From Ascidiella aspersa (taxonomy: Eukaryota): a stretch of 64,000 nucleotides of DNA. Positions 2,329 to 32,800 of this stretch are shown piece after piece. The stretch covers positions 5,518,001-5,582,000 of the forward strand of contig OZ004610.1 of the NCBI GenBank assembly GCA_963924565.1, read 5' to 3'. The notes beneath the pieces are model-generated. The model saw only the letters and a program-made list of their open reading frames with translations. It had not been told where the DNA came from and made no database searches. Position numbers and translations under genes: made by a program. Every line of letters begins with the position of its first letter. The first letter of the stretch is position 1.

Positions 2329-5300
2329 GTAATGCGTTGTTTCTATTTATCGAATCAAGAAAAGTAAGATCTAAAATTTGCATTTTTCCCTATAGGTGTC
2401 TGCAAAATCACGCAAAGGCGCTTCTCAAACACCGAAAGACGTTGAACGCCTCGGCAAGTACAAGTTTACTGAAAGGCTAAACCAGTGATTCCCGAACTGT
2501 GTGCCGCGGTACACTAGTGTGCCTCGAAAGATTGCCAAGTGTGCTGCGAAACTTCTAGTAATTTCACAAAAAGGCATTGTAGACTTAAATACCAATTCCC
2601 ATTACAAATTAATCGTATTGGGACATTTACATTTAGTTTGACGTGTGTTAAGGACGAATGTAAAATGACTCTACTGTTGTTCTGCTGAAAGTGTGCAGCG
2701 AAATATTGAATTTTTAGTGTGCCGCGAGCCAAAAATTTTTGGGAACCTGTGCTAAACAGTCTTACCAGACTTGGTATATTTAATCCTTCCATAGATAATT
2801 TTAACTTTTAATAGAAGGAAGTTCCATATTACAACTATTCACGCGTTGCAGTATGTTTTATACATATTTATTGATTTGTCCATATACATGTTTATGCATC
2901 AGACCCGATCCTGAATGAACAAAGTTTTATTTATGTATATAGTTTTCCACTACCTAAGCCCTCGGAAACCTGTTATAGGTCAAAGGCTAATTTTCATCAG
3001 TTTGTTCGGGTTTTAATTTTGTATCTCTGGCCTAATGGCATCGTGATTTCTTTTTTGACATGTTAAAACAGAAGTCGGCAAGTTTTTCCTGGCGGCGGGT
3101 CTGACCTAAACTCAGAAAGGTCTCTGTGGGCCTTACACAATATTAACTTATACTTTTGTTAAAACGTGTAAATTTAGGCATTTATTATGACTCTCATTTA
3201 AGGGCGGATTTTATATTTGAAAATTGGTCTAATTAGCAAGCTAGATTAAACAAAAACATACTATGTTCATATTTAAAAGACTAGTGCGCAGCACAATACA
3301 ATGCATTTAGATTTATTAAGTTGGTGAAACCTTCTTTGTTGATAGTTTCCGCCAACATACTGGCTGTGGAAATAAGATTCACGCAAGGCGCGAAAGGGTT
3401 TACGTTTACGCATGGTTAAAATAGGCAAAAATATAGAGAACGGTTTCTTGCCCGGTTGACAAAAGAGGTGGCTGGCCGGATGATATACATTTAGCGGGCC
3501 GCGGACCGCAGGTTGCCGACCCCTGTGTTAAACTAACGAAAGGCAGCCAAATTCTTCTTAGCGTTCTGTTCGTTTGCAAACTAGTAACATGGGCTATGTA
3601 TCTTGGTTATAGGAAAACTATAGCTGAGTCAAAGTAACGTGTGTGTTATATTTGTTAGGAGGAAATAAACCCGTTAAAATGGTGCGCCTTCTCCAAAGCG
3701 CAAACTTGTTCCTCTTGTATTCGGCCATGTGAACAACGCTTCGCCACCCTTCCGCAGTGCATGGCATTTTGTGAAGGCGACATAGATTGCATGTACAGGT
3801 AGGAATGTCTGGTATATTAAGTTTGGAGCTTTCACGTGATAAAATTATGGTCATAACTTGAAAAACCTACTCTCAGTATTAATGCTTATACGTTAAGTGT
3901 CATTAATAGAAAAAATACACTCATAAAATGTAACAAAAAATTGGCCAAGTTGTAACAAAAGACATGCCAGTCATTTCGTATCAGATCAGCCTTATAGTCG
4001 TATAATTAGCAGATACACATTTTTAAAACATTCCATTTTTGTTTTTCTTAATTAACAACTTAAAAAATAATTACATTTTGTCAAACATATCTATCAACGA
4101 TTACGTGTCCCCATTTGTGCAAAACAAACCTGTTGCCTATTTTCGGCAAAATGATGATGCAGTAAAAAAGTCGCGATTGTTGCATAAATCTCGTTTCAAG
4201 CCATTTTCGCATTTGCAGCTGCGCATACTTCGAGGACATTTCAGGGACCAAGATGGGCTACTGTCCGGCGCCGACAGCCTACAACTCCACTTTAAGGACT
4301 CCCACCAATCTCGTTCCACGCAGCTCTTTAGCCCCACCGCGCGGTCACAGTGACGTGAGATCGGCGAGAAATTGCACTTCGACTTGCCGCACCGACTACG
4401 ACTGCCGAAGCAACCGTAAGGTATCGAAACTGACTTGAAATTAACTTGCTGTAATTATGACTGCTTGTTATTTTTTCAAAATAACTTGACCTGGACTTAA
4501 GCTATTTCACAAAAGACTTGATTTGTTCACAACACTCGTAAGTCAGCAAGTTCTAGTCTTGTTTTGATTCTACTTAGCTCACAATCGCTCCAGCTTCCAT
4601 GCCAGTATTATAAGCAGGAGTAAAGGGAGAGTTACCGAAGCGATGAATTATTTTTGTGCCATAACGTTTAAAATGTTAAGGTATGACGTCACAATGATAC
4701 GTCATAACTGGACGTCGAAAACAAGTAACGCGATAGGAAACCTGAGGTTGACGTTCAATATAGTGCACGAGTATGCAACTGAAATCCTAGTTTAGAAACA
4801 TTAAAAGCATGGCGAATGGTCTGGTTAAAATAACATTTGTGTTTTACTGTTCAGTGCTGCGTGGTTAATTGTCGCGGTTTTTGTCGCCCTCCTCTCTCAA
4901 AGCAAGCATGGTTGCCTCTCAAGTTGCCCAGGAGAAGCGTCACGATCAGAGAGACCGACGATGGACAGTCGGCCGTCTTAATTTGGACACAGGAAAAGAA
5001 CGTAAGTCGTTCAAAAACTCTATTTAGGTTAAATTTGTCATGTTTATTTTAGGGTAGAAAGAAGTTATAATTTGATAACGTTAAATTTTAACCATTTTTA
5101 GTTGCAAAATTTATGGTACTAAATAAACAAACGTTGTTGTGCAGTTTCACCCTGTGTGGACGATGTATTTGGTGCAACAGCAATATCGACTTTCTCGCGG
5201 AATTCCTAAGCGATTTAGAAAATGGCAAACCATTACACAGGTATCGGAACTTACAATGCTGACTAACATAATCGTTGTGTTACGAATTTATAAATATATA

Positions 5301-17877: not shown

Positions 17878-20800
17878 CTGATGAATAATGGAGAAACATT
17901 GGTTATTCCGGGCTTGCAGGTCAAACGGTGGCAGTCGTGTAAAGATTTGCCATACTTAGTGTTTTATTTTAATTCCGAAAGCCGAACGACAGTGATCGGC
18001 AAACTGTTTCTGCCGCGGCCAAAAAGTACTCAATTGGAGCTATTGAAGCATTACGACAACAGGGTAAAAAAAGAAGGGGAAAGCTTTTAAGCTTTTAGCG
18101 ATGGAAAATTACCCAAAAAGCGTAAATTTACGACGTGCTATTGGCCTATTGCAGCCTTGTATATGGAGTTGCAATTTGCTTCCATGATAAGACACTAATT
18201 ACATTTGTTGCCCAATTTCACGGTGTTTTATTTGAACTATACCTCCTTAGGTAAATGGCGGATTTTGTTCGTTTACCATTTTTGAGATACCTATATATCT
18301 ACATCGATCACAGACCATAATTTTAAAACAACAGAATACGCTAACAAAAATCTAAGCAGTGAAAATGTGTGAGATTTAGAATTCCTTAACCTGGTGCGCG
18401 AAGACGTTTTCTGTGTTTTATCTCAAAAGAAGTGACGCCCTAACAGTTTCGTAGTGCTTTACAAAGTAATACATAATGTAATATTTAGGTTAAAAGCTTG
18501 TGACTGGATCACAAACACTAAGAAATACGGAAAAAATGCTCACTTAACGTTGAACAAATATACATAAAATGGCGCCCATCTTACCTTGGAGTGCGTTGCG
18601 GCAAACGGTCACTTTATCGTCTTTTATTTCAACATAATCTGCAAAGGAAGAAAACTTATTGTTAGCTTGAAAAGGGAAACATTTGGGATAAGCTTATTTT
18701 TGATTGCTGAAACAAAACTGAACTGGCGCAAAAGTGAATTAAAGGAGTTGAAATTACAACAACACAATGCAGCAGTGGCTTAGCGGCCTGCTTTCCACTT
18801 TACAGATTAGTCGAGTCGAAAGGTTGTAGGTCAATAAAATTACGAATGCGGCCGGTGTTATCCGCGAAGAAAACCCACATAAAATGGATGCAAGGAGATG
18901 TGTGCCGTTTTGCTACTATTAGTTAAACTATATTTCTACTTCTACTTTGACCTGATGAAGCACGGTTGTGCGAAAGCTTGTCATGGATCCATACAGTTTG
19001 TCTTTATATAGTGCCACGTTGATTACCCTTAAAATTCGTCAAATACGGCCGTTTACAAATCTTAAAATACTACAGTTAGATTTGAATGGGAAGGAGATTG
19101 ATTCTTTTTTTGTAAGTTTTTTGATTATGGAATAACAAAAGGATTCTATCAGGTTAATTATTTTCCAAAACGTAAATATTGTGCAAATTTGTAAGGTTGA
19201 ACTCAGATGACTTTTGTATAGGTAGATTTTCTTTACCAGACAGCAGTTTTGTAGTAACATCAATTTTGAAAAAAATGGAAAACTATGAAGGTATTACCAC
19301 TGATGTGTAACGGTTATTTCAGCGAAAAAATCTAAATGTAAACGCTTCGAGTGGGTATAATACGAGTAGCCGATATAAAATTGATGATATTAAATGGAAA
19401 TAAAACAAAAAAATAATTGCGCAACTCGTTGCCCGGCGAATTACGGTCGCAAACAAATTACAAGGATTAATTTTCAAACAGAGTGAAAACGAACATATAG
19501 AAAAGGCCGTTCAGGTGTAGTGGTATACCAGCATATTTTGTAGTGGCATACCAGCATATTTTGTAGTGGTATACCAGCATATTTCCTGCAAAAACTTAAT
19601 GTGTGTGCGAGAATCCACTGGAACTGTAGATAGGATAATATGCATAGCGGTCAGAGTCAGGTTCGGCTGAGGCAAAAATTGTTGAATGAGATGCTGTTTC
19701 AAGGTTATGTGGGAAGCACAAAGAAATAAAAAAAAAGTGAAATTTAAAAATTGTGCACGTACGAGTACTACTTGGAAAAATTTGGAGACTTAGACCAAAT
19801 TTTAGGTAAAAGTTGTGATACAGATCTGTTTAAGCTATAGAGAAATCCTCGTTCGTCAAACCGGTCTTGTTGTTCGAAATTGCCGTATGTGGACTTCAGA
19901 GGTTGTAATCCGTTACTGTTTTTGTAATAAAACGCGCGTTTTTAATTTGCGAGCGAAATTAAAAGCTCGCAGCATCTGATATAAAGTGCGGCCATTTTGT
20001 CATCAATTTCATGCTTAATTACATTAGCGCACAAGGTACTGGAGTCGCACGACTCACAAAATGTAATTATTTAAAACAATTAGGAATGGTAACAGCAACA
20101 TTTGGCACAATCGCCGAAGAATTTGGGATTAAAAAGTAATATGCCCAACTAAGGCACCGGACAAAAAAAAACATTGGGAGTTTTAGGACACTGACAAACA
20201 AGACCCATTAAAAGAACATAGTAAAACTACATCCGCATTAATAATGTCATTATTTTTCTGTCGTTCTCAAACGCGTTGTTATTGAGGTCATTTGAAACTC
20301 TAACCCTCTAGTCGACTAGGACAGAATTAATGCGATTCGTGGACGACCCATGGGTTTATAGACACGCGCGCGAAAGAAAGAAAAACGGTGCAAAAAAGTA
20401 ATTAATTCGTGCAGCCGATGTCAGCCCACAAAACACCACGTAAACCAGAGATTGCGTGCAACGCGGGGGGCACATGCTGCCGTTGTAGGTTACAGCCGCC
20501 GATAATTGCTGCTGCGCTATTTCAGCACTTCTTCCCGGGCTCGCTATACCTTCCCGAACGTGAACAAAACGGCAGTAGGGCCGCACGCACTTTCCCGACT
20601 GGTAGTCACGGCACACTGTCATGCTGGTAGCGCCACCCGCGGACTGCTGCTGCTGTTGACTCTGATGCTGTTGCTGTTGATTGGACATTTGGGCTTTCGC
20701 CGTGGCGTATTCGGCGCTGAGCTGTTGTCGCGAACGTCCCAAGGTATAGGCGGGTTGGCGTAAAGCAAGCGGTGAGTAAGGGGAACACGAGGCCGGTTAG

Positions 20801-23800
20801 TCAAGGTTACAGGGTTTGTGGCAAGCGAAAGGAAATCACAGTGCGCTATACCGGGAGATGCCGCATCGTATTAGATCGATGCTGTGGCTGGTTGAGTTGT
20901 CGTATTGCCGAACAAATTCACACAAAAATGTGTAAAATTTTAAGGTAACTGGTAAACATATTAGGCTTCGGAGCATAATGGTTGGAGGTGGTAGTGAGAC
21001 GTAATATCTGTGCCTTCTTACAATGTTGAAAATGAATAAAGAGTTATTCGAAACCTTGAAAATGATACCTACTTCTGTATGGGCTTTGATATTCTTATTA
21101 CATATTAAGCTTATATAATATAAGTCGTGGAAGTCAAATGAGGGTATTCAAATAGGCAAATAAGATTATTAGTTTTTAATTTTTTTAAAGTAGTCGCGAA
21201 CCACTTTGTTCAATTCACTTCAAAATTTCGATTTTTATCGAACTTAAACTCGTTGCTTATTGACATCTCCCGGTATCGCCATACTGATTAGGTAACGTAT
21301 CACATACAAAGCAACGTATAGTCAAAAAAGCGGTCGGTTAGTAGGGTCAGTATGGACAAAACAACGTCGACAAGCCGCTATAGTCTAAACGCACACACAT
21401 ACACAAACGAACGAGCTTGGTACAGTTAAACGTCAAAAAGTACATCAAAATGATCTAAAAACACCGACCTGGCTGGTTTGGCCGTTGAGCAGAGCGTAGC
21501 TAGCAGCAGCAGCCGCCGATCCGCCAGGGGCGCTGGCGCTGGTCGACGGCAGACTGAAGGCTGTGAGCTGTGCACTTTGGGCGGCGCCTGGTCCGGCTAA
21601 CTGGAGCATCGGGAAAGAAGCGGCTGCGAGGAAGGTAAGGGTAACAACATTGTGTGTCAAAGCCCATACAGAAGTGGGTACTATTTTGAACGTTTCGAAT
21701 AACTCTTTATTCATTTTCAAAATGACTATGTCCATAGAATGATAACCATTAAACCGATAAAAGGATGGTGGAAACGTTAGGTCTAATTTAACGGCAATTA
21801 AAAAAAATAACATTTCTTAAATTTGATCACAAACATGTACATAACAGTAGCCAAGAAATGCTATAGTAATCAAGATGATTTTATTTAGTGGTAAAAGAAT
21901 ACATATTGATTTCGTCAGCAAAGGCACCGTGAGTATACCTTAATTCAAATCAATGGAAAGAAAAAAAAATGTATTCAGCATTTTATCCCACCCAAATACA
22001 AAGAATTGTGCTTTGAAAACTCAGCCATACACTTATCAAACATTTTATTTAGTGTTAAGCATATTCAAAAGCATCGTCAAGCATGCCTTGATTCGAATGA
22101 ATCGAAAGAAAAAAACCTGATCTATTTTGCATTTTTTTTTCAACCAAATCCAAAAACAACGCATAAGTGCGACTCATAACTGGGTCATTTTCGCGATCAC
22201 ACGGCTAAGCAAAAAACCAATCCACCTATACACTTACCCTGCTGGTAATACGCAGTGGGCGAGTGCAGGCTCTGATGGGGCAGAGTGGCCAGTCCCTGGA
22301 GGGCCGCCGCGTTGCTGTAGCCGTACAGCGCCGCCAGGGTCGCCGCGTTCTGGGAGCTGGTGGGGCTTGGGGCCAATCCGGGGGAAGACCCGAGTCCGGA
22401 AGCCGATGACGTAATAATGGACGACTCGAGGGCGTGTCTCTTGAGCGGTGGCTGACCGATGCCCGAGCCGTTGGTCATCTGCGCAAGGGAGAATTGGGAG
22501 GTGTGGTGGTTTGGGGAACGGACTTTTGTCAGATTTTTTAAAAGTTATTTGCGCGTGTTTGGCGCTAGGTCGGAGACGTTTATTGCGAAGGTCAACTGTG
22601 GTTGACAACGTTTAGCTCAGCGTTTCTCAGCCTTTTATGGCTAGTGGCACCCCTCAGAAATAATAAATAGATTGCGGCACCCCTACAAGAATTTCCGTAG
22701 GTAATTTGCTAGGATGTTACAATAAACGGAACTGGAACTACACACATCAACTCTACACAAAGAAGGAAGTCATAATTAAAGTTATTCGACTCTTACACAA
22801 AAATAAAAAAATATTTTCAACATGTTAAACAAGCGGGAGTTTATGGGTTTTACTAACCACGAGAGAAAAAATCTGAGATTAATTGGTGTAAAGTTAAAGT
22901 CTGGAGGTTTGATCGCATAAAAATGATAGAAATGCTTAAAATGAAAATGAAAATCTTTAAACTCAAAAGAATATTTAGAATAACGTTGATGTCCGATTGT
23001 TGTGAATATTTTTTCGTTCAGGTGTTTAAAGGTATAAAAGTCTACAATGCTCTCTTTGGAGTGCGTAAACAGTTTAAGGGTATCATTTAGAGAAGGGTCA
23101 TATACTTTGAAAAGGGTCGACAAGTGGTCCAACGGTGACAAATTGATGATTAGGAAAACACAAACAAGGCGAAAAACCGGTAGCAAGTCATGCAGTCGTG
23201 AAAAGTAAGACACAAGTCGCCCAAGGGCCGCATGCAAAAAAGGCTTTCCCGGTTAAGTAAGCCGATACCAATTAACGCATAACGAACACAGCGTATGGTA
23301 ATCAATCAAGCTCACAAAAGCCGTCATTGAAATTTCAAGAGCGCTTTGTATACAGATCAAATTATGGGAATATTTGGGGTAAAATTTAAGTATATTTAGT
23401 TTTATTTTAGCTTACCACGTCCTCCAGTGTAAGAACCCGTTTGGGAGCCTTGTTAGTGGTGGGGTGGTGGGGGTAAATTTTGGGGTGAGACGGGGTGAAA
23501 GCAGGCAAGAGGTGAAAAAGCGGGGGGGTAACAAGCAGAAAGCGAAAAGAAGAGCAGCAGTGGGTAAAAGAAATAATAAAAATCGCCATTAATCAGTGGT
23601 AAAACTCATTTAAGTATAGTTTCAAATACAAACGCTTTACACCTCGTCAGTGGTAATTAATTAATTATAGTAATGACAAAGCATGGCAAAGGGCAGTACA
23701 TCATTTTTGTATAACTATATCGCTTTATGTTTACAGAGAGCTATACATTACAATAAACGAAATGATTGCACGTGAAAAAATGACATAAAAGCCATATGAC

Positions 23801-26800
23801 TGCTATTTGGTATTACATATTTCTAATCAATTCATTGCAATGAAAGAGCAAGACTTGTTGTTGTATTTAAGCATTTTAAATAATTTGTGTGTACAAACGT
23901 AGTTTTAATATTACGATTTTGCTTGCATTAAGAAAAAAAATCTTCGGAAAAAAGGTTCGGAATTTAAAGAAAAGTGAACGAGAACTAGCCGAGATATGTT
24001 CGATTGCTGAAAAAGGAAAGGTAGCAACATAAGGGCGCACCAAGGGCCTCCGGTTAACCGCGCACCTCTTTATTGCAGTTAAAGCACACAAAACACACAC
24101 ACGCACACCAGAAACACTGCAAATTACTACGTCGACAACCGGTTGGCATTCCGGCTGAAAAATCGACGACATGCGAGGGAAAGACGAAATAAAACAAAAC
24201 AGCACTGCCATGAGTGGATGTCGTGCGTTTATATGACGACGGCATTATGAGCATTGCGGGATGCAGCGGCTGCTAAGCTCGGTCAGGTACCAGCCCCAAT
24301 CGAAATGTATACGTCGTACAGGGCTCGAAATTTGTTTTTTGGGAATATTTCGAGCCCTGCGCTGGTACGAGGCCCAGCAAAGCGGCCGATCTTTCGCAGT
24401 GCTTAATGGGACCTACCATGACGGTGGGCTGCGGTGTTAGTGACGGCAGAAAAGCGGCGGCGCCCGGATTCTGAGCGGCGCGGATTTTGGCCTGCAATGA
24501 ATTAAAAGCAAAAACACGGGGTAAATTGCTGGGCGCGATCGGCCGGGTGTGAAGGGGGTAAGCGGTAGAAGGATGTCCGGCAATCTGTGCATTGTTTCGA
24601 TACGGACAACTGGTATTTTGCGAGCACCGATACCCGATATTATCGGACATCCCTAGTAAGCGTGACGCGGTAGCACATAGAAGTCGTGACACGATGCGCG
24701 CAGCTGTAGGTGAGGAAACGCCGTTTCCACGCGTTCCAACAGCACCGCTGCATTAGAAAGGAGAAAATGACAATGAAATAAGCGCGGATTCACGCGTTCG
24801 ATTAAAATGGCGATCGAAAACGAAGTTTGAGATTCGCTTTTCGCGCCACGAAAAATCACATTGAGGGCTGTTAAAAGGGTAGGAGGTAATATGGGCAGAC
24901 AAATCAAGTTCGGATAAGCTCAGATTAGGAATTATACCACAAAACCGATTGGGTACACACGCGGTCTTCAACGCTTCTCTTGCTTTGCTGTTTTTTGAGT
25001 TGACCGAAAATTTACTGAAAAAGTGGGATGACGATTTGGTATAGACATGACTCCGCGGAGTTGTTTTTTTGATTTATAAATTAACCTTGTTTATAACCCA
25101 CAAAGTTATTCTACCAATTTTAAATCAAGGGACTACGTTTTAAATAACCTTATACGATTGCTATGGCGTTACATGGAGGCCAGTCAGCTGTCTTAAGCAG
25201 TTTAAAACTTATAGAAAATTTAAATCAACTTGAATTGATGTCTTAACTTAACACGGCCATTTTGATAGGCCCACCTGAATATTTGTCTATAGCACTCCCA
25301 AGCGACAGGTCAAAATATATTGACGACAGTCTTGTAATGCGTTTATAATGAATGACTTGACCTACGCGTACTTAAATACTTGTCATTAAACTACTTTATA
25401 CAAAAAACCTCGGCAAATTGACTGAAATAAAACAAATACGGGACAAGCGTTTACGGAATCAAATAATAAACAATCAAAATACGGGACGAGTTATCGATTT
25501 CAATAGTTTACCATTTGTTCTATATTCAATGATTTAACTTGCCATTGTATGATGTCTTTTATTTGAAACGACTGGGCTTGGACTTATTCGCAAGCAAGTC
25601 AAGTTGGACTTACAGGCCTTATAAAAAAACAATTATATAACAAGGATTTTTTTTTAAATTTCAACCTAAATCTGAATTTTCCATTTGACGTAGCAGGGTT
25701 AATACTGAACCAAAGGTGCTCAGATTTGGTTTGTGTGGTTTTTAATCGTAACCTAACAATTCTTGGGGGGCCCACAAAAATTCGAAAAAAAGTGTTTTTT
25801 TGATCAATATACAAATTTCAAAATCGCATTTTGATTAAGGTCTAGACATGTATATGACAAAAAAGCATACGAAAACGCCGACGGCAAGCGCCCTTACCTG
25901 CAGATGGGTGGGCGGGTGAAAGTACTTGCACTTCTCGCGCGTGCACCGGCCCTTGATGCAATCCATGCAGACCGTGACCGTGTTGTCGGTCACGTCGATC
26001 ATCGATCTGTCCGGTGGGTGGCAGTAGCGGCACTCGTACTCGCCACGTGTGCAGTTGCCACGTTGGAAGTCGCGGCATACCTGGGTTAAGGAAAGCGGGT
26101 GTTCTTGTCAAGCGTTGTACGGTTATATGTTTGGAGTTTTACATTCTCAACGGACACCGAGCTTAAATCTTGTCTGTCCGAAAATGTTAACCCGGGAAAT
26201 TGTTTTTGTCTAAGGCAGGGGTTGCTAACCTGGGGTACGTGGACTCCTTGGGGCTACATGAACTAGTTTTAGGGGGTTATTAAGGCCTAATTGAATTTTG
26301 GGTGTATACTTTTAAAACTTGAATGAATTTATACGTTAGGAGTTTCGCAGTCTTAACGGGCACTAAATTTTATCTTGCCTGTCCAAAAAGGTTGATGTCG
26401 TTTTTTTTTTAAATCGGGCGAAATATTATGTTCTTCGAAAACTTCGAAAACCCTGGGGTCCGTGAACTCCTTGGGGTACATCAACTAGTTGAAGGGGGTC
26501 CTTAAAGGCCTAATTCCATTTTGAGTGTATAATGTGAACAATAGAATAATTTTTTTTTACATTTAAAAAAAAAACACGTTACTTTATGAATGTATTTCAG
26601 CATCACATTTGCTGGAAGTGGATTAAGGAAAAGGTGTTCTTGTCAAGCGTTGTATTGTTATATGTTAGGAGTTTTGGAGTCTCAACAGGCATTAAATTTA
26701 AATCTTGTCTGCCCCCCGCCATTTTAAACAATAAAACGGACGAATTTTTTTATCCCTCAAAAACCTGGGGCGATTTTGTTGTTTAAGGCAGAGGGTTCTT

Positions 26801-29800: not shown

Positions 29801-32800
29801 ACGGTCGTTTTTCTCTGTGTTTCAATGAGGAGCAGCAAAATCTGTGTATCACGATCTTTCGTGCACGCTGGATGCAAGTAGCGATACCAGTATTCATTCA
29901 TTTTATTTCAAGGGAGCAGCTAATTGAGGTGTTAAGAAACAAAAACTAAGGGTCCTAATTTGTATTGATGCTAACGGGGGTTACTTTTATCATGAGTTAT
30001 CATTGTCATTCATATTTACTTCCTGGAGGCTGGATTCTTCACAGTGACTTTCCGAACACTTGACTACACACTACTTGTAATTTTTTAACGTAGATATTTG
30101 TTAAAAAATCGAAATAAAAAGCGAAAAAGCAAATCAACAAAAAAACGCGATCTTACCTCTAGTTTGTCGGCCCTGAAGGCACCAGCAGAGGGCAGCATAG
30201 CAGCGGCCATTTGCTGTGAAGCTGCGTGTTGCGCGAGCGCCAACTGGTGGTGACTCGGTGACGCAGCGACCGGGTAATACGTCATGTAGTGCTGGTTGAG
30301 ACTGGACAGTTCAGCTGCTGAACGGTAATGGAAAAGTACTTGTTATTAAGCCGCCCTGAACTGCGTCGTATAGCCGGCGAGACAAGTTTGAAAAAAGGCG
30401 AGAGAAAATAATTTATTGGGTCGGTTAATGGCCGCGTGAAAGCGATTATTTGTGAAACTGATTGGATCTATAATGGACAGTGGTTCAACGAGAATTCAAC
30501 GAAAAGTATTAAACTTTTTTTGACAACTCAAAAACTCGTTTGATGCTGTTTTTTTTTCGATACGCCGGTATAGACGGCGAGACGAACTTTGCCAGAAAAA
30601 AAGAAAAAAAAGGCTAGATAAACTGATTTATGGTGTCGGTTAATGGCCGCGTGGAAGCGGACTGGGTCTACATTGTACAGTGCTTCTAAGAGAACTCAAA
30701 CTTTTTATTTAAACAAAAATGATTAAGATTTTTAACAGCACAAAAACTTGTTTGATTATAATGAATGCCGAGGCCAAAAGGTCGACCAAATCGAAATCAT
30801 CTTGATAAAGACGTTTCGATGCGCACTTCTATCATCATCAGTTAAAGTGTATAAGTCAAGATGATGTCGATTAAGTCGAAGTATTTGGCTTTAAAGTTCA
30901 TTGTCAAGATACATTACAGATCCGCGCATAGTGTTTCTTAAGTATGTTTGTATCCAAAAAAACTCCTTTTTCTCACTAAAAATAAAATTTTACCCTAAAC
31001 TATATTCTTTATAAATACAAACTTAAAGTGACGTGGCAGAAGGAAATAGAAAACGAATATTTTTCAACATTCATAAATATGTGGTTAAAGGCCAATTAAA
31101 TGCTAGAATTGTTCTTTAAAGTAGTTACTGATAAAGGCGTATTGCGCCATCTTTTTGCTTAGCCTTTGAGTTTAAGAGAACGTGCTTATTGATTTGATGA
31201 ATGCTACGTCACGTCAGTTTCGTGTCATGCATTTAAAATATAGCACAAAAAGGAAAATTTCACTGTCATAAATATTTGTGTAATATTTGCCACTAAGACA
31301 GTTATGATTACTGTAAGACAGGCAACTTATTTTTTACCGCGGACTGCTAAATTATTTTTTTGCCTTGCATAGACCAAGGGTCGATAAACATTTTTTTGAG
31401 ATGACGTCACAATACAAATGAACTTCAGAAATTCGCTGTTTCCAGTCCAAAAATGTGAAAGTGAAATGGAATACATTTCTGGGCAAAGTTTTTTTTAATT
31501 AAACTTTTTTCTTTAAAAAATTGATTAGTTTTTACATTATACTAATATTTCAAGTAGGCTGTAATGGACCATGCAAAACTTGTCCACACACCTCCGAGGG
31601 GTCCATGGACCCCTGTTTAAAAACCCCTGCTATAAGGGAACATATCAGTTCATGGTACACAACCTTTGTTCACCCAAAAAACTAACACAGCACTCAATAT
31701 TCATAAAAGAACATGTTGCAAGACTACGCGCGTCAGCTGAAAAAGCAGCACACATATATATAGCCACGGCTAGGAGCGGCGGCGGGCACACTGCTGGCTG
31801 CTGCGGCTGCGCAAAAATCGCACACGCGAAAAGGTGGGAAAAAACACACAAACGAACAAAACACAACAACAGGTTGCATCTAAACAGAGCGCAAACACAA
31901 AGTATACCTGAGGGCAGAACGCTGTAAGTGGGTGTACCAGCGGCGGCCGTCGGAGCTGCGATGTTATGGTTATACAGGCTGCTGTGGAGGCTGTTGACCA
32001 TGTGGGCGCCGCTACCCCCCGTCATTTGCTGCAGGTTGGGACCAGCCGCGGGGTACAGGTGGGGTTTAAGCAGGGGGCGTGCACGAATCAACGGCAAAGT
32101 GGGTTCCGGGGATTTTTTAGTGGTTGGGTGTTTTTTTAGGGTTAATGGTCAAACGAAACGGGGTATGGGTGAAAGAGGAGAAGAAAACAAATATGATTAG
32201 AACACGCTATCGCGACACACGCCACAAAAAAGCAAAACAAGGGCAGCATTGTTAGTAGGCTAACGTTACAGAAAAAAACGCTAACGCCATGTGCAGCTTT
32301 TTAGCGCAAACTGTCTTTACTTGTTTATCCACACCCTCGTGGAAAAATTGTAGGCGCGAAACTCCTACACCATTGTCGCACTTGCTCTATAACACTTAGA
32401 GCAATAGGTAATGCGAACCTTAAAAAAAAATAGAATTGGAGGGCTAGAAGGAAAGTGGCTACCAATAAACTTTGGAACACAATACACGTTTTTTTAGTAA
32501 TGTTTTTTTTAGTAATCTTTTACACTGATGATGGCATGAGGTATTGCTGAAACGTCTGTAAATTGCGAAATGTCGATTGTATCGAATATTATGGCTTTGA
32601 TATTTTTTTATTTTTTTTAGGGAAGTGTCAGGAGTATTTGTTGTGCGCATGGCCAAAGAAAACTCAAAACCGAATCTTCCGAAACGAAAGGTACTAAGTC
32701 TAAGTGCCTGCTCGGGTGACGCGTCGTCCGGGTGCGACCTTTAAGCAGTCATTCGGGTCCACTTCACTTCCAAGTTGCGTAGGAAAACTTTAACCCAGAC

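Follow-up and report, generated by a model that had tools for sequence, protein, structure and literature searches.

A conserved KR microexon of the ascidian muscleblind gene, preceded by an AG-exclusion zone with clustered MBNL motifs

The ascidian Ascidiella aspersa has a single muscleblind (MBNL) gene, part of which occupies the minus strand of the 64,000-nucleotide (nt) stretch analyzed here, called the window (assembly GCA_963924565.1, contig OZ004610.1, positions 5,518,001 to 5,582,000; coordinates below count from its first letter). Between the exons for the peptide segments AKIRAAQ and LKRHALE, this gene carries a 33-nt microexon that supplies the first of two lysine-arginine (KR) dipeptides. 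Judged by its sequence and that of its relatives, the microexon is real and conserved, and in two other ascidians the annotated isoforms make it a cassette. It is preceded by a long intronic zone that has no AG dinucleotide and that contains a U-rich distal part and a cluster of the tetranucleotides preferred by MBNL proteins. The best explanation of these features, which we regard as probable, is that the microexon is a cassette of the type of vertebrate MBNL exon 5, working as a nuclear localization signal (NLS) switch under negative feedback by the muscleblind protein (MBL) itself.

The microexon, GCTCCCAAACGGGTTCTTACACTGGAGGACGTG on the minus strand (GCTCCC...GACGTG), encodes 11 amino acids and lies between the acceptor caAG/G and the donor GTG/gtaagc. 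The relevant junctions are all in phase 0, so that the exon stays in frame whether it is included or skipped; a 30-nt variant using the donor GAC/gtggta is possible and would differ from the form found in Phallusia cDNA. Its KR is encoded at 23442-23437 and the second KR, in the following exon, at 22442-22437. A cDNA-derived protein of Phallusia mammillata (CAB3263669.1, P0003) has the identical 11-residue peptide at the same junction, and the exon is included, as TTQKRLLTLDDV, in a spliced Logan RNA contig from a different species (P0004/L009). Alternative use is recorded in the RefSeq isoforms of Ciona intestinalis, where proteins of 603 and 592 residues, and others of 485 and 474 residues, differ solely by APKRILALEDM (annotated pair XP_018671400.1 and XP_009862110.1), and in Clavelina lepadiformis, where X1 (621 residues) and X2 (609 residues) differ solely by TAQKRVLAIEDV (XP_076807559.1 and XP_076807560.1). 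These are direct orthologs of the window's exon, with APKR(I/L)LALEDM or TAQKRVLAIEDV either there in full or missing altogether, and with the same intron layout.

Comparisons of genomic DNA were made over six ascidian loci: the window, L002 (a species also represented by L001, L004, and L005), Ciona (L008), L011, L010, and Clavelina (L014). The exon is 33 nt long in the window, in L002 (AAKRVLALEEV), and in Ciona (APKRLLALEDM), and 36 nt long in L011 (AAPKRVLSIEEA), L010 (TAPKRVLTIEDP), and Clavelina. Differences between species within the exon are mostly synonymous; among the 11 codons compared between the window and L002, six have synonymous changes only and three have conservative ones, a pattern that argues for selection on the peptide. 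The flanking exons are 65-83% identical to those of Phallusia, yet the microexon peptide is identical. The transcript L003, partly spliced and reaching only 51 nt upstream, is uninformative on the exon and was left out, and a metagenome scan for further species brought up nothing but more contigs, 99.6% identical, from the species of L002. In a more distant relative (L013, positions 4753-5051 of an ENA assembly contig), the intron of about 175 nt between AKIRAAQ and ALKRHAID has no KR microexon, and this lineage looks like one that lost the exon or never had it. The contigs L001, L002, L004, and L005 come from JGI metagenomes and represent the host DNA of one ascidian, in which several exons of the MBNL gene had been called as short 'bacterial' open reading frames.

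The position of the microexon in the protein relates it to a known vertebrate exon. In vertebrate MBNL1 (the vertebrate comparison used non-human proteins), the upstream exon ends in ...AAAM and is followed by the KR exon TQSAVKSLKRPLEATFDLG and by IPQAVLPPLPKRPALE of the next exon; in fish MBNL2, the corresponding parts are ...ACM, TQSTAKAMKRPLEATVDLA, and FPPGVLQPLPKRQALE; in ascidians they are ...VM, the 11-residue KR exon, and an 18-residue start of the next exon; and in amphioxus the KR exon, ...QSLKRLRDPSDDLL, is followed by GFPPGMVPYAKRPTLD. In all chordates examined, namely in the window (7 + 12), Phallusia, Ciona, Clavelina, amphioxus, and vertebrate MBNL1 and MBNL2, 19 residues separate the first KR from the second; in scallop, starfish, and brittle star, the spacer measures 18-22 residues. 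From the shared junction after ...M, the KRxL...D[VL] core, and the KR-X19-KR spacing, we conclude at the level of sequence that the microexon and vertebrate MBNL1/2 exon 5 are orthologous, with the ascidian exon shortened on its 5' side. The vertebrate exon belongs to the same gene family, and the junction at which it sits, from AKI(K/R)AAQ...M to PLPKRPALE or PPLKRHALE, also exists in the ascidian gene. Both exons are in frame, the ascidian one being a cassette in the isoforms of Ciona and Clavelina, both have the KRxL...D[LV] core and the 19-residue spacer, and both follow a YGCY cluster (Y, pyrimidine) and a long AG-free zone suggestive of a distant branch point. The ascidian exon measures 33-36 nt, as against 54 nt in vertebrates, with only the KR..L....D[VL] core of the peptide in common. 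The AKIRAAQ segment is a separate exon in the ascidian gene, unlike in vertebrate MBNL1/2. Upstream of human MBNL1 exon 5, a YGCY silencer, a mapped distant branch point, and an ultraconserved intron have been described (PMC5082313). This upstream intron is ultraconserved in vertebrates but cannot be aligned even between ascidians, among which the layout and the motifs alone persist. On the invertebrate side, MBNL isoforms of the echinoderms Asterias (P0043) and Amphiura (P0033) contain ...KKRAREPADDIIL... and ...LKRQRDPADYILL..., respectively, followed by KK 18-22 residues further on, and these sequences fit poorly with the published view that the KR repeat is missing from Ambulacraria. The MBNL gene of Branchiostoma floridae spans 110 kb.

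The zone upstream of the microexon in the window extends for 154 nt without an AG (its gap is given as 156 nt in the comparison with the other loci), from the acceptor AG at 23450-23449 back to the nearest upstream AG at 23606-23605. Only 5 of the 2987 AG-to-AG gaps on the minus strand of the window reach at least 150 nt. In all five comparison loci, too, the gap before the microexon is longer than any other AG-free one in the intron (171, 137, 142, 198, and 149 nt). From base composition, 2-5 AG dinucleotides would be expected per zone; the probability of finding none is 0.001-0.09 per locus (0.09 for the window alone), and these values multiply to about 3e-11 for the six loci together. In five of the six, purines make up 37-43% of the final 60 nt upstream of the acceptor, still with no AG. 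A blastn comparison (word size 7) of the window with the L002 species matched exons only, and when the zones are aligned, identical positions are scattered. AG-free zones have thus been kept in introns that otherwise cannot be aligned, which argues that AG is excluded by selection. The same strand has four further gaps of 161-235 nt without AG, all within the gene (32208-32030, 20478-20317, 19587-19426, and 17561-17326); the one ending at 32030 is located where the tblastn match to a linker exon has its 5' end.

Within the zone, the distal end carries UUUAC and CUGAU followed by the most U-rich tract. The CTGAT at 23596-23592 places an adenosine at 23593, 145 nt upstream of the exon, and branch-like candidates lie at -145 and -152. 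In the majority of the six loci, U content peaks in the 5' third of the zone, and pyrimidine content is lowest in the 3' third. This layout, which has also been reported for human MBNL1 exon 5 (PMC5082313), points to, but does not prove, a distant branch point from which the splicing machinery would scan to the first AG, and the adenosine at -145 may be taken as one good candidate among several.

Between this candidate branch region and the exon, seven YGCY motifs (in UGCUGCU, CGCU, UGCU, CGCU, and UGCCUGCU) start within 23559-23503, that is, within 60 nt, and form a candidate MBL-binding intronic splicing silencer. A density of 7 YGCY per 65 nt occurs at only seven places on the minus strand of the 64-kb window, several of them alanine-rich coding sequence, and the count exceeds that in mononucleotide shuffles (7 versus 2.7 expected, p ~0.01). 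By such shuffles the window alone is only modestly unusual; the significance of the motifs comes from the comparison across species. Tested against mononucleotide shuffles, the six zones together contain 43 YGCY where 17.0 are expected (z 7.1), 25 TGCT where 6.0 are expected (z 7.9), and 19 GCTT where 6.0 are expected (z 5.5); in the same zones, words typical of PTB (TCTT, CTCT, TTCT) and of CELF show no enrichment (z -0.8 to 0.5). YGCY and GCUU are the specificity words of MBNL proteins (PMC5041496). An unbiased ranking of all 4-mers over five loci has GCTG, TGCT, and GCTT at the top and CTGC, TTGC, and CGCT within the first eleven, and all six words are present in five of five species. Closely spaced or tandem YGCY pairs number 12 against 1.4 expected, and the enrichment of YGCY is significant in five of the six species individually. 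Common descent alone would not retain these words in introns that are otherwise randomized. A CTTGCY core is present in all six zones; it was chosen after looking, and its p-value is not used as evidence. On the other side of the exon, RBFOX-type UGCAUG motifs lie at 23236-23231 and 23194-23189, at distances of 180 and 222 nt downstream. Four of the six ascidian loci have GCAUG in the 300 nt that follow the exon, and none has it in the 300 nt before (background 0.66 per kb); the downstream UGCAUG may act as an inclusion enhancer.

The exon and the elements around it had been described in an original prediction made from the letters of the window alone. That prediction named an in-frame exon with the donor GTAAGC between the AKIRAAQ and LKRHALE exons, 154 nt without AG upstream of it, a CUGAU 145 nt away followed by a U-rich tract, and seven YGCY motifs in about 65 nt; all four can be read in the window as described, the motifs lying within 60 nt.

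Read together, these features suggest how the switch could work. Inclusion of the microexon would place a KR 19 residues before the KR of LKRHALE and so create a bipartite-like double-KR NLS, as in human MBNL1 and Caenorhabditis elegans MBL-1, whereas skipping would leave a single KR and a more cytoplasmic protein. The microexon's 3' splice site has no good adjacent pyrimidine tract and would depend on the distant branch point, with the first AG downstream of it taken as the acceptor. Nuclear MBL would most likely bind the cluster of UGCU, GCUU, and YGCY words between the branch region and the exon and block the 3' splice site. High levels of nuclear MBL would in this way yield less of the nuclear isoform, closing a negative feedback loop. 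The double KR is known to act as an NLS and autoregulation by MBL-1 has been shown in C. elegans (PMC10773944), and Ciona MBL represses a human MBNL1 exon 5 minigene (PMC5041496).

The RNA available from A. aspersa itself consists of one stranded run, about 6% of which was read, with the tissue unstated and with depth rather than splice junctions used. The exons on either side are clearly covered, with bin means of 7-11, an estimated depth of about 18x for the 75-nt exon, and 24 reads at 22446-22464. The 194-nt bin that contains the microexon has a depth of 0.08, or less than one read, compared with about 18-24x on the flanking exons in this single run, although a 33-nt piece in the middle of a read may escape placement. 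In the sampled RNA, the microexon is skipped or nearly so. Alternative splicing is documented by the isoform pairs of Ciona and Clavelina and by inclusion in the Phallusia cDNA and the RNA contig, next to a run from the species itself that covers the flanks and not the exon. Skipping in differentiated tissue is predicted by the feedback model, and the low depth neither confirms nor refutes it. The reads also differ from the assembly: 9 of 10 have a CTG insertion at 20643 (an extra glutamine codon in a poly-Q tract), and at 22446 and 22464, respectively, C>T is carried by 16 of 24 reads and C>G by 18 of 24; most reads are 95-99% alike. The RNA therefore stems from an individual or population that is divergent, a common situation in ascidians.

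The near absence of RNA on the exon is one of several observations that weigh against an MBL-controlled switch. The YGCY count of the window is less striking against dinucleotide-preserving shuffles (7 versus 5.5, p ~0.18), and the tests over six loci are not fully independent, the species sharing ancestry. Other branch-like sites of the form YUNAY lie in the window at -26, -38, -48, and -65. Ciona has fewer YGCY than the window (three, which is the chance level) and a canonical proximal branch site, CUAAC, at about -24, so that neither the dense YGCY cluster nor the distal branch point is universal. Finally, part of the model is carried over from other systems: for ascidians, we infer the repression by MBL from the enriched motifs, the case of human exon 5, and the effect of Ciona MBL on the human minigene, and the NLS role from the human and worm data, and the choice of branch point is likewise our inference.

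These points leave room for other explanations. The exon could be a real cassette that is controlled by factors other than MBL, such as PTB-type or other U-tract binders or RBFOX acting on the downstream UGCAUG, with the GCU-rich words reflecting the composition of a pyrimidine tract or the preference of another protein that reads GC-containing words. The zones are indeed 65-75% pyrimidine with 21 UCUU over the six loci, the window has its two downstream UGCAUG and GCAUG is found within 300 nt in four of the six species, FOX-1 co-regulates the C. elegans exon, and the chance-level YGCY of Ciona is as this explanation would have it. However, the contrast between the flat PTB and CELF words and the strongly enriched TGCT, GCTT, and YGCY (z 5.5-7.9), the leading place of MBNL words in an unbiased ranking, and the repression of the human exon by Ciona MBL through such a cluster all favor MBL, and co-regulation by RBFOX would add to control by MBL rather than replace it. 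We therefore consider control without MBL unlikely, if still the most serious competitor of the feedback model.

It is more improbable still that the exon is vestigial or near-silent in A. aspersa, conserved from a Phallusia-like ancestor and effectively always skipped. The depth of its bin in the sampled run is what such an exon would show, but that is one run of unstated tissue, read to about 6%, and the feedback model itself predicts skipping of the adult type. Moreover, nothing is broken in its reading frame, its two splice sites, the AG-free zone, or the motif cluster, and its peptide matches an expressed Phallusia cDNA residue for residue while the neighboring exons are only 65-83% identical. 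As for a chance open frame between chance splice-like sites, for which only the missing RNA reads speak, we give it practically no weight: it is refuted by the recurrence of the exon at the equivalent position in six ascidian genomes and by its presence in a cDNA and an RNA contig, with substitutions that are mostly synonymous. A muscleblind cassette of the exon 5 type, repressed by its own product, remains our preferred account.

The identity of the host gene is supported by its pair of CCCH zinc fingers (Pfam zf-CCCH_10, E = 2e-27, on 26107-25838) and by the exon encoding fingers 3 and 4, which is 88% identical to its counterparts in Phallusia and Ciona; the 308.6-Mb genome has a single MBNL locus, and the exon for fingers 1 and 2 lies 3.4 kb past the end of the window. 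Compared singly, by tblastn and by reading of the sequence, the exons match proteins of Phallusia, Ciona, and Clavelina one after another (Table 1). The microexon comes after the exons for fingers 3 and 4 and for AKIRAAQ and directly before the exon with the second KR. The 75-nt exon has the acceptor ttgcag/ and the donor ATG/gtaggt, and the 241-nt exon the acceptor gcgcag/. In their best-conserved parts, the exons of the window are 83-88% identical to those of Phallusia, and the LKRHALE exon is 59-66% identical to those of Ciona and Clavelina, values that place the animal closer to Phallusia among ascidians, though distinct from it. A profile of this last exon searched against 1.8 billion representative proteins found 11 matches only, the named ones being P. 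mammillata and C. intestinalis; a further search added proteins from Clavelina and Styela.

Table 1. Features of the muscleblind gene in the window (slashes elsewhere in the text mark exon-intron junctions).
Feature	Position	Strand	Basis or content
Exon for zinc fingers 3 and 4	25898..26080	-	Pfam; match to Phallusia and Ciona
Upstream constitutive 75-nt exon, 25 residues, AKIRAAQ segment, phase 0/0	24417..24491	-	sequence, tblastn, RNA depth
Candidate distal branch region and polypyrimidine tract	23560..23604	-	UUUAC, CUGAU, then the most U-rich tract
AG-exclusion zone	23451..23604	-	delimited by the flanking AG dinucleotides
Candidate MBL-binding intronic splicing silencer	23500..23559	-	seven YGCY
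33-nt microexon, cassette in relatives, 11 residues	23416..23448	-	sequence, Phallusia cDNA peptide, orthologous exons
Downstream 241-nt exon with LKRHALE motif	22238..22478	-	sequence, homologs, RNA depth
Other exons of the gene (approximate)	34584-34366, 32070-31894 (linker exon), 30315-30154, 21642-21466, 20754-20551, 18639-18562, 17890-17690	-	tblastn

Further downstream in the same gene, the last three of the tblastn exons encode a third pair of CCCH fingers and match the C-terminal part of the 592- and 603-residue isoforms of Ciona and of the 606- and 621-residue isoforms of Clavelina. By this comparison, ascidian MBL can carry six fingers, and shorter isoforms (484 residues in Phallusia) stop earlier, at ...QIMLK. 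The introns of the gene also contain high-copy repeats at 20882-21269, 21658-21851, and 22628-22821, whose summed contig depth in a DNA run is at least 10^5, with many loose ends and odd joints, and which draw RNA reads on both strands.

The general principle behind this exon has been published before (Verbeeren, 2023; Oddo, 2016). A KR repeat on adjacent exons is found in the MBNL genes of virtually all bilaterian phyla, with the first KR exon consistently alternative (PMC10773944). In C. elegans, exon 7 of mbl-1 resembles the ascidian exon in being an alternative exon with the first KR, the second lying in the next exon; its inclusion gives a nuclear isoform, MBL-1 represses its own exon, and conserved YGCY motifs lie nearby (Verbeeren, Teixeira, and Garcia, 2023; PMC10773944). 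It differs in encoding 75 residues, against 11 in the ascidian, and that paper mentions neither an AG-exclusion zone, nor a distal branch point, nor ascidians. RefSeq had already annotated the cassette in Ciona and Clavelina. The original prediction treated such conservation in an invertebrate as new; the host is a tunicate, and the principle had been published. Its placement of the exon at the position of vertebrate MBNL1 exon 5 agrees with the junction, the KR core, and the 19-residue spacing, and its remark that the two differ in length and peptide is correct. Its further proposal, that the same feedback architecture has been retained in an invertebrate, is supported in part: as to layout, a long AG-free stretch and clustered MBNL words recur at all six ascidian loci, while repression by MBL, the NLS role, and use of the -145 adenosine stand as predictions. 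What appears to be new is the tunicate detail, an AG-exclusion zone, a 5' U-tract, and clustered MBNL words that are kept without conservation of sequence, of which we found no earlier description.

Tunicates are the sister group of vertebrates. Perhaps the module of distal branch region, U-tract, AG-exclusion zone, and tandem UGCU/GCUU words was already in place in their common ancestor, kept since then in tunicates by architecture and motifs and frozen in vertebrates as an ultraconserved element, a scenario that we advance tentatively and with slightly less than even confidence. The tunicate exon-5-type switch keeps its KR-X19-KR geometry and its upstream layout although the introns have diverged past alignment. 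It is a good example and a modest comparative addition that leaves current understanding unchanged, and it supports the published idea of an ancient autoregulation of MBNL through the localization of its isoforms, for which ascidian embryos offer a simple test bed. If the ancestral scenario holds, ascidians would provide a compact, electroporatable system in which to dissect the feedback loop of MBNL affected in myotonic dystrophy.

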